Shown in pieces: positions 3,001-5,207 of a stretch of 64,000 nucleotides of DNA. The position numbers and the translations under genes are program-made. Source of the DNA: Amoebophrya sp. A120 (taxonomy: Eukaryota; Protista; Dinoflagellata); NCBI GenBank assembly GCA_905178155.1, contig CAJINV010000010.1, positions 1,502,094-1,566,093 of the forward strand, written 5' to 3'. The notes beneath the pieces were generated by a model. It saw nothing but the letters and a program-made list of their open reading frames with translations. It had not been told where the DNA came from and searched no databases. How positions within the stretch are numbered: the first letter of the stretch is position 1; every line of letters begins with the position of its first letter.

Positions 3001-5207
3001 AAAAAAAAACGGGAAGTCACCAGGCTCCGGGAGGATTTGATCCCACCGTTAGAGTTGGCGGTGCAGGCGCTGCGCGGGGAAGTTCGAGAGCAGGAAGAAA
3101 GGAATTACCTCGCTGAAGAGCAGTTTGATTCCGATTTTGACGGGGACGATGATCTGGGGAGCTCCGCTGGACGGGGAGAGGGGCTGAATGAGGATATGGA
3201 AGGTAAAAAAATTATTCTTCTTTATTGTCTGTCCACATAATTAATAGGCGTCGGGGAATGTAATTACGGAGATGACTTTGAAATATTATTTGAAAACTGG
3301 TAACTCGCGCTTCGCGTTCGCTATTGCGGGTTTTCAATAACAAACGGATGCCCTTTTTTGCCCGAGTGCCTGTATTTAGCGGACCAATTCTGGTGACCCT
3401 GTTACGATTGCGCCGTCCATATTTCAATCGCGCGGCTAGCACAACTGGAAGTGCGCTCGGTCGAGCTCTCTCCACCCACATATCTCTACCGGGCCGATCT
3501 TGCCATGTGGTGTGTGTGTCTGCAGGCACTGAAAGAGACCAAGCATCGTCCAGCACCGGCGCTGCGATGCTTGAGAGAGGTCAGCAGCAGTGTGGGCTGG
3601 TGCTCTGAATGGCCACCCGACTGCCGGTCGGCGCCGACCGTGACTGAGAGGTCCGGGTCCGAATCCCGGAACGCGCATTTTTTTCTCAGCGATTCTGGAG
3701 ACCCTCTCCTCCGCTTTCCGGATGTTGCAGTGGTTCCCTTCGCTCAGTGGTACTAGGGCGCCTGCTCCACCCCCTGTTTCAACTATAAGAAATTGCAAAG
3801 TCCCCGGGGGTCGTGGGCGCGGGTTCGATCCCCACAGGGAGCGCTTTTTGCTGCGATCTTGTTTCCACAGAACAAATACAAGTGCCTTGAACTACTGGTG
3901 CCATGTGTTTTCAAGAGCCTGCCTCAGAGCATTGCTTTTCAGCGTAAATAGAATCATGCGAGTTGTTGTTTTGCCCGAATGTCTGTGTTTAGCACAGCAA
4001 TTCTGGTGACCCTCTCTTTGGCTTGCGCAGATGTATCACAAGTTCCCTTAGCTCAGTGGCAGAGCGCCCCCATCACTTGATTCAACTTTCGATTGAAAAG
4101 CAACTTCGGGGGTGGGCGCGGGTTCGATCCCCGCAGGGAACGCTCTTTGTTGTGATTTTTGCACAAGAAGTACGTTGAATTACTGCTGCCATGTGTTTCT
4201 ATGGACCTACCGAAGAGCATTGCATGCTTTTCAGCGTAATAACAGAGCGAGGAGGTGTTGTTTTTGCCCGAGTGTCTGTGTTTAGCACAGCAATTCTGGC
4301 GACCCTTTCTTTGGCTTACGCGGGCATATCAATAGTTCCCTTAGCTCAGTGGTAGAGCGCCCCCATCACTTTATTCGACTGCAATTCGAAAATGAACCTC
4401 GGGGGTGGGCGCGGGTTCGATCCCCGCAGGGAACGGCATTTTTGAATGTGTAGCAAGAGAAAGACACTGGGGTCGGTGTGTTGCATCACAAGAAGTTTGT
4501 AATTTTTTTTTTGCGATATTTATCTAAAACACGCTCTACCTACGACAGACAACAACTCCAATTCCGCTGGGCACAACTCCTCCATCGGGGACCGGCAATC
4601 CATGAAAACCATCACCGACATCCGCGAATCCGGCCTGTACCAAAACCACACGCTGCTTACCAACCGGAAGAAGAAGCTGCTGAATCGCCTGCCGATCCAG
4701 GCGTACACCCTGCACCCGGAGCAGGCGAACAGTGACATCTCGCAGTTGAAGCAGCAGGTAGAGTTGTTGGATAAAAAGCTTGTCGACCAGAGAAACAAAA
4801 TCCAGGAGCAATACAGCGAAATCATAGAGAACAAGAAGAAGTTCCGGCAGATTCAAGGATTGTATTTGACCCCTACAAAGGAGATGGAGTACGTTCAAAA
4901 CGTGTTCCGTCGGTTTATCGCGACCATGCCGCCGGACTCGCAGTGCAAATCGCTGCTGCCCGTCATGTACAAATTCTTCCAGATCGATCCACCACAACTA
5001 CAAGCGTCGGTCATGGGAACTGCGGGTGGAGGAGGAGTTGCTGCACAAGCACAAACTGCGCCCAGCGCTGCTGGGGCTGGCGGAACTGCGGCGGCTCCGA
5101 ATAGCGGCACCACGACGGCAACGACGACGCCGGTGGTCAGTACGGTGACGAGCGGAGAGGATGTTTTGATGAATTCCAGTGGAGGAGGCGAAGCGGCGAA
5201 GGTGTGA
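1..5207 (+). CDS. GRIP-domain golgin-like coiled-coil protein, 5' end outside window. Introns 1507-1678 (GT-AG), ~1996-2470 (introner), 2529-2701 (GT-AG), 3203-4548 (GT-AG, hosts tRNA-like cluster)
   Basis: E/K/Q/L-rich coiled-coil ORFs 81-1532, 1813-, 2806- and 4602-5207 join in frame with phase-matched splice sites. C-terminal EMEYVQNVFRRFI...LLPVMYKFFQI resembles the GRIP consensus (EYLKNV...LLPVI). Confidence 0.8.
1997..2466. mobile_element. Introner family A
   Basis: TIR TATCAAATGCAAAAATGTCTG / CAGACATTTTTGCATTTGACA; DR GGCAG/GGCGG. Confidence 0.85.
3355..3400 (+). promoter_or_regulatory. Conserved upstream element of tRNA-like gene 0 (TTTGCCCGAGTG..TTTAGC..AATTCTGGTGACCCT)
   Basis: Same motif precedes all four tRNA-like genes; GACCCT ends at 3400, 3705, 4013 and 4306, i.e. 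29, 27, 28 and 28 nt before G1. Confidence 0.65.
3430..3677 (+). ncRNA. tRNA-scaffolded structured RNA (248 nt) with a 177-nt insert in place of the anticodon loop; probable Pol III transcript
   Basis: 5' half GCGCGGC-TA-GCAC-AACTGGAA-GTGC-G-CTCGGTCG; 3' half TGACTGAG-AGGT-CCGGG-TCCGAAT-CCCGG-AACGCGC-A, followed by T7. Two acceptor mismatches and a TCC T-loop. The insert has several helices and no T4 run. Confidence 0.65.
3678..3684 (+). terminator. Pol III-type oligo-T terminator
   Basis: TTTTTTT immediately after the discriminator base of the 248-nt RNA; T5 runs also follow the copies ending at 3843 and 4435. Confidence 0.55.
3733..3843 (+). ncRNA. tRNA-like gene copy 1, degenerate, expanded anticodon region
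   Basis: Acceptor GTTCCCT/AGGGAGC, D arm GCTC..GGGC, T arm GCGGG-TTCGATC-CCCAC, T5 downstream; homologous to copies 2 and 3. Confidence 0.6.
4042..4142 (+). tRNA. tRNA-like gene copy 2 (101 nt), 36-nt anticodon region; nominal CAC anticodon with 29-nt intron, or extended arm with apical CT-TTC-GA loop
   Basis: Perfect acceptor GTTCCCT/AGGGAAC, D stem GCTC/GAGC, stem CCCCC/GGGGG, variable loop TGGGC, T arm GCGGG-TTCGATC-CCCGC, G73. Confidence 0.7.
4335..4435 (+). tRNA. tRNA-like gene copy 3 (101 nt), same body as copy 2, apical CT-GCA-AT loop
   Basis: Cloverleaf stems identical to copy 2; inner hairpin TTCGA/TCGAA; T5 at 4439-4443. Confidence 0.7.

Follow-up and report, generated by a model that had tools for sequence, protein, structure and literature searches.

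The described systems most like the gene reported here, which occupies positions 3430–3677 of a 64,000-nucleotide (nt) stretch of the Amoebophrya sp. A120 genome (the window, contig C10:1502094–1566093), include the nuclear tRNA genes whose introns are cut by Sen. These share with our gene and its paralogs an interruption of the anticodon arm at the canonical place, exons that form a cloverleaf, and an insert unconstrained in sequence and length, and their published intron lengths run from 6 to 133 nt in eukaryotes and from 11 to 129 nt in archaea (PMC4090602). The family differs from them in its long inserts (108–334 nt, where the published maximum is 133 nt), its C33 and C37, its lack of a conserved anticodon, a 3' splice site that is predicted to be buried in a helix, an external promoter, and a variable discriminator. 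In an archaeal tRNA-Trp gene, the anticodon loop is likewise interrupted, by an intron with a box C/D RNA, but its C/D boxes and bulge-helix-bulge are absent here. Engineered tRNA-scaffold RNAs, in which cargo is placed at the anticodon loop on an extended stem, have the same layout but are artificial. Transfer-messenger RNA (tmRNA) also joins a tRNA-like domain to a large structured domain in place of the anticodon arm, but it is bacterial or organellar and has a G3.U70 pair, a conserved tag reading frame, and pseudoknots; we rejected this assignment for the locus, where ARAGORN is negative and G3 pairs with C70. The genes for tRNA-Sec, U6, and 7SL RNA, with type 3 or hybrid promoters, resemble the family in their upstream element, its similar distance from the gene, the terminal T-run, and internal sequences resembling A and B boxes, though tRNA-Sec has its own UCA anticodon and no insert, and the Rfam tRNA-Sec model matches other loci and not the window gene. 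Vault RNAs are likewise small multi-copy families transcribed by RNA polymerase III (Pol III), with A and B boxes, upstream elements, a conserved terminal stem, and a variable center, but they are ~90–140 nt long and have no full cloverleaf. A search of the genome for the major vault protein (PF01505) gave no match but is uninformative: control genomes gave none either, and the genes here are split by many introns.

The gene had been proposed, from the letters of the window, to be a Pol III RNA that uses a tRNA shell to carry a structured payload where the anticodon loop should be. Its parts, with the flanking control sequences, are as follows.

3354–3399, plus strand: upstream promoter element, made up of a T-run, GCCCGAGTGC, TTTAGC (3375–3380), a 7-nt spacer, TTCTGG (3388–3393), and TGACCC.
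3430–3460, plus strand: 5' tRNA half (nucleotides 1–31), with the acceptor strand, U8 A9, the D arm (A box), G26, and the 5' strand of the anticodon stem.
3461–3643, plus strand: insert of 183 nt, the gap between the strands of the 5-bp anticodon stem.
3644–3677, plus strand: 3' tRNA half, with the 3' strand of the anticodon stem, the variable loop, the T arm (B box), the 3' acceptor strand, and A73.
3678–3684, plus strand: T7 run directly after A73, a Pol III-type terminator.

Nucleotide 1 lies 36 nt from the TTCTGG of the element. The acceptor 5' strand GCGCGGC (3430–3436) precedes U8 A9 and a D arm (3439–3454) that reads GCAC, AACTGGAA, and GTGC, with GG in its 8-nt loop; G26 and the anticodon-stem strand CTCGG (3456–3460) complete the first half. 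On the far side of the insert come the opposing strand CTGAG (3644–3648), the variable loop AGGT (3649–3652), the T arm CCGGG/TCCGAAT/CCCGG (3653–3669), the acceptor 3' strand AACGCGC (3670–3676), and A73 (3677). Direct reading of 3300–3800 located the tRNA halves, the T7 run, and the stem strands where they had been predicted, and it confirmed an 8-bp extended stem (3456–3463/3641–3648) with 177 nt between its strands, the absence of TTTT from the insert, and two real acceptor mismatches, G6.A67 and C7.A66. The T loop (TCCGAAT) carries a U55C change unique to this copy, all others reading YTCGART. Only the start of the insert, UCGAGC at positions 32–37, and its end, G(−1) and A38, are semi-conserved across the family; the rest is peculiar to the window copy. 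ARAGORN at default settings reported no tRNA and no tmRNA in the window, and Rfam gave no match at 3430–3677 even at E = 10, while scoring neighboring tRNA genes at 52–54 bits, in agreement with the original prediction that this is neither an ordinary tRNA nor a member of an Rfam family. With introns allowed, ARAGORN calls the locus a tRNA with an intron. A minus-strand open reading frame across it (3439–3798) matches no Pfam family.

A search of the 115.5-Mb assembly with the 248-nt gene matched both tRNA halves elsewhere and the insert nowhere else. Together with pattern searches and fetched loci, it defined a family of at least 14 members, including the window gene, and one sister gene, a concrete set of 15 loci.

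C10, window 3430–3677: the member described above.
C2: five members in a 2.5-kb cluster.
C10, 1.055 Mb: three members in a cluster.
C10, 2.749 Mb: one member.
C11, C19, C4, and C18: four members, one per contig.
C3: the sister gene, with a perfect 7-bp acceptor stem in which 6:67 and 7:66 are intact.

All copies carry an insert at the identical position. Paralogous units can be aligned only from about −100 to +40 and over the final ~45 nt, and a structure alignment of related inserts was not meaningful. The shell is ~90% conserved, in contrast to leaders, flanks, and inserts, which within the same units have diverged nearly to saturation. In an alignment of 13 genes, scored on a structure consisting of the cloverleaf and two extra pairs, 91% of cells are paired, and eight pairs have changed on both sides with pairing kept, among them 13:22 in the D stem, 28:42 and 29:41 in the anticodon stem, and 49:65, 50:64, and 51:63 in the T stem. 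The covariation score is 0.257 against 0.136 after shuffling (reached in 0 of 500 shuffles), and slid controls score no higher than 0.08. Promoter and terminator alike are retained in the copies dispersed over six contigs. Judged by these patterns, the cloverleaf shell appears to be under selection and the insert sequence does not, and the tRNA-scaffold architecture is far beyond chance. We take the family to be lineage-specific and derived from a tRNA gene. Among metagenome sequences, the 5' half had no match and the 3' half only chance matches to bacterial coding DNA and unrelated tRNAs. The description of the A120 genome does not discuss tRNA genes (PMC7789003).

The family also stands apart from ordinary tRNA genes in its promoter. 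Every copy is preceded by a ~45-nt element comprising a T-run, GCCCGA, TTTAGC, a 6–8-nt spacer, TTCTGG, and a short pyrimidine-rich box; in the family genes examined, ~36 nt separate the end of the element from nucleotide 1. A genome search with its core pattern gave 200 matches, against 59 for a reversed control, and downstream of these matches Rfam identifies U6 snRNA (106 and 99 bits), the signal recognition particle (SRP) RNA (96 bits), and tRNA-Sec (64 bits, with ARAGORN in agreement); three tRNA-Sec genes carry it. The element is absent before ordinary tRNA-Gly(GCC) and tRNA-Lys genes in arrays. Because it is common to U6, SRP RNA, and tRNA-Sec genes and missing from ordinary tRNAs, the element points to an external-promoter class of Pol III genes, and we predict from it and from the T-run, which in most paralogs is a T4–T7 run at most 5 nt from the discriminator, that the family is of this type 3-like class. 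A and B boxes are present in the family genes, 200–390 nt apart. The original prediction of a Pol III gene on a tRNA shell is therefore upheld by the U6-type element and the T-run, but the shell can account for the promoter in part at most, since the promoter is mainly external and U6-like. For a syndinean dinoflagellate, this defines an external Pol III promoter with which further small RNA genes can be found, a use that is relevant in a genome where U1 has been reported as undetected.

The features needed for decoding are missing from the family. After the anticodon stem, the consensus continues UCGAGC. Most copies have C33, and 9 of 10 have C37; position 34 is G with hardly an exception, and 35 and 36 are variable. 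On inspection, no register for joining the flanks of the insert yields a conserved 7-nt loop. No inner hairpin with a 5-bp stem and 7-nt anticodon loop is shared among the inserts, and when ARAGORN is permitted introns, the ten family genes receive nine different anticodons. Position 73 is A, G, C, or U depending on the copy, and the acceptor stem has only five standard pairs plus two fixed mismatches, G6.A67 in 12 of 13 genes and C7.A66 in 8. The lack of a conserved anticodon, the C33 and C37 residues, the variable discriminator, and the two fixed acceptor mismatches together show that these RNAs cannot decode. One could still imagine true decoders that share a common body and acquire different G34 anticodons (GAG, GAA, GAC, GGU, GUG, GGG, and GAU) once an intron is removed, which would account for a near-invariant G34 beside variable positions 35 and 36. 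We find this hardly credible, as C33 and C37 break the near-universal rules of U33 and a purine at 37, the discriminator does not follow the putative anticodon, a class I body would bear a leucine anticodon, and the acceptor stem is mismatched.

Beyond the family, its covarying shell, its promoter class, and its missing decoding features, which we take as observations, the question is whether the insert is kept or removed. Our tentative preference, with a probability somewhat short of even, is that the insert is retained as a structured arm, free of sequence constraint, on a non-decoding tRNA shell. Pol III would initiate at the external promoter shared with U6, SRP RNA, and tRNA-Sec and terminate at the T-run; the cloverleaf shell would let RNase P, RNase Z, and CCA addition trim and stabilize the transcript; and the insert would extend the anticodon stem through 32:38 and 33:−1 before opening into a GC-rich, fast-evolving, branched arm, giving RNAs of ~250–400 nt. 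What would then matter is that there is a shell with a long, stable arm, whatever the sequence of that arm. The pairs 32:38 and 33:−1 form in 97.8% of cells, and at this helix member g, like the two members added last, has C-G in place of U-A. With the cloverleaf enforced, the unpaired probability of −1 and 38 is ~0 in 11 of 13 genes, while in valine-like pre-tRNAs of the same locus and promoter class the loop and 3' splice region are 0.75–1.0 unpaired, so in these folding models the covarying helix buries the canonical 3' splice site. The inserts have a GC content of 56–66%, against 49% in local spacers and 31–34% in the two valine-like introns of the window, and a mean fold z of −1.65 against −0.49 for 36 random windows of the genome; as a class they are GC-rich and somewhat over-structured. 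No TTTT occurs in any of the 11 inserts examined (2356 nt). The closed covarying helix, the high GC content, the excess structure of the class, and the absence of TTTT favor retention.

Several points weigh against retention. At its 5' end the insert is conserved over 6–9 nt, at its 3' end over only 2 nt, an asymmetry that is the footprint expected of a canonical intron at position 37/38. The insert sequences appear to diverge at a roughly neutral rate, the best pair (members c and e) being 65% identical, about the level of non-promoter leaders, and other pairs being unalignable. No k-mer or motif is shared among the inserts above shuffled expectation. The absence of TTTT is not significant alone, as 13% of shuffles likewise lack it. 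Finally, some members may be decaying, given a fold z of only −0.78 and the U55C change in the window copy and the broken acceptor of copy c.

The strongest rival, doubtful in our estimate, is that the insert is a giant canonical 37/38 tRNA intron, which the splicing endonuclease and ligase would remove to leave a tRNA-like RNA of ~72 nt with a UCGAGCA loop, the external promoter offsetting the long distance between A and B boxes. It accounts for the exact canonical position of the insert, for conservation that covers 32–37 on the 5' side and only A38 and −1 on the 3' side, and for the roughly neutral drift of insert sequence and length; two of the encoded proteins have a tRNA-intron endonuclease domain, the neighbors under the same promoter are intron-containing tRNAs, and 9 of 11 family members pass as tRNAs in ARAGORN once introns are permitted. 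It has to contend with a canonical 3' splice site that lies within a covarying helix, with the lack, on inspection of 13 copies, of any bulge-helix-bulge motif or anticodon-intron pair, with inserts of 174–334 nt that exceed the published ranges and would make these the longest tRNA-type introns known, and with a GC-rich composition where the valine-like introns next door are AT-rich. The spliced product would, moreover, keep C33, C37, and a Watson-Crick 32:38 pair and so would have no working anticodon loop. Direct repeats at the insert ends, like those of the non-canonical introns of this genome, were not found on inspection.

It is rather improbable, in turn, that the genes are decaying or inert relics of tRNA genes whose shells are alike through shared ancestry or gene conversion and not through function. 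The fixed acceptor mismatches, the variable discriminator, the missing anticodon, and the damage in the window copy and copy c would all fit decay, but it would not be expected to leave the shell conserved beside near-saturated surroundings, to exchange eight stem pairs on both sides with pairing kept, or to spare promoter and terminator on six contigs. At the other extreme lies function in the arm itself. If the inserts are retained, the family would be nature's parallel to engineered tRNA scaffolds. One can picture a class of stable Pol III transcripts of 250–400 nt, each with a processed shell that does not decode and a copy-specific structured arm that has its own function, perhaps the binding of proteins or an action on transposons or the unexplained non-canonical introns. 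We consider this class quite improbable, and a role of these RNAs in the non-canonical splicing of the genome has no support. Very improbable is the strong form of the original prediction, in which each insert is a specific functional cargo, such as a guide, a small-RNA precursor, or a small nucleolar RNA, mounted on the scaffold. The resemblance to engineered scaffolds, the GC-rich and over-structured character of the inserts as a class, and the keeping of a long insert in every copy speak for it; the inserts have no consistent box C/D motifs and no common k-mer, the window insert has no match elsewhere in the genome even at E = 10, and the divergence between related inserts looks neutral. 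As for the payload being structured, the helices listed for the window insert are indeed complementary, but neither excess structure nor conservation was found in this copy: its minimum-energy fold pairs 3472–3480 with a partner other than the one proposed, and against dinucleotide shuffles the fold z is −1.48 for the whole RNA and −0.78 for the insert alone, which places it among the least structured of the family. With structure at the shuffled level and no conserved sequence or motif, the insert behaves as a spacer or intron would, and not as expected of a specific cargo.

Other candidates were rejected. A tRNA-derived short interspersed element or other dispersed repeat is at odds with an insert that is unique in the genome and with a conserved upstream promoter, which points to duplication at the DNA level; the same uniqueness at E = 10 excluded the insert as a repeat, an introner, or an antisense guide. 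A primer tRNA for retroelements was dismissed because sites complementary to the 3' end occur at control frequency (23 vs 24).

Downstream of the gene, the window contains three related tRNA-like genes.

3733–3843, plus strand: degenerate valine-like tRNA copy (RF00005, 22.7 bits, below the cut-off), with only the proximal half of the promoter.
4042–4142, plus strand: valine(CAC)-like intron-containing tRNA (Rfam, 54 bits) with a 29-nt intron and an element at 3989–4011.
4335–4435, plus strand: second copy of the valine-like tRNA (Rfam, 52 bits), with an element at 4282–4304.

The C19 family gene is also followed by a valine-like intron-containing tRNA. In the valine-like genes of the window and of this C19 locus (L009), the loop start AUCAC is conserved, position 73 is G, the introns are 29–45 nt long, and the external promoter is the same; their inner hairpins differ in the C19 copy and so look like intron structure. 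Three raw-read RNA runs under the same species label have zero reads on 3200–5200, mRNA included, and since they lack reads even on mRNA they do not test the locus. A run of transcript contigs covers only the neighboring mRNA, from 4547 onward. The contig that starts there (window 4547–5200) begins with 46 letters that are unmatched in the window, which suggests that an upstream exon or leader is joined at 4547.

The upstream element, which we take as the external Pol III promoter of the genome (examples are L014, L018, L020, L026, L042, and L048), also precedes other kinds of sequence. At L015, L017, L019, L021–L024, L027, and L028 there are tandem arrays with a period of ~125–150 nt, each unit being the promoter element followed by ~75–100 nt of G-rich sequence that ends in a T-run; Rfam gave no match on the arrays L015, L019, L022, and L028. 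At L034, L035, L037, L044, L047, and L049 the element leads directly into satellite arrays, for example a 15-mer repeated dozens of times. Genes of 190–270 nt stand behind the same promoter at L029, L030, L041, L045, L046, and L104. They have a terminal stem (5' ...CGGGTAG..., 3' ...CCGYGC before the T-run) and a common GTAGCGTGTCGAG-like block, and the start of one has 14 of the 15 nt with which the tRNA-shell family begins; a scan of L029 at Rfam gathering thresholds returned nothing, and these genes may encode RNase P/MRP-like RNAs. The start of the family also resembles a dispersed repeat that has no Pol III promoter (L099, L101–L103, L105, L106, and L113). This repeat, probably a transposon end, follows a conserved GCAAATATGTCTGGGTCTGGAA block and contains GCGCGG(G/A)TAGCACAAG, which has a single mismatch to the 15 nt that open the family genes.

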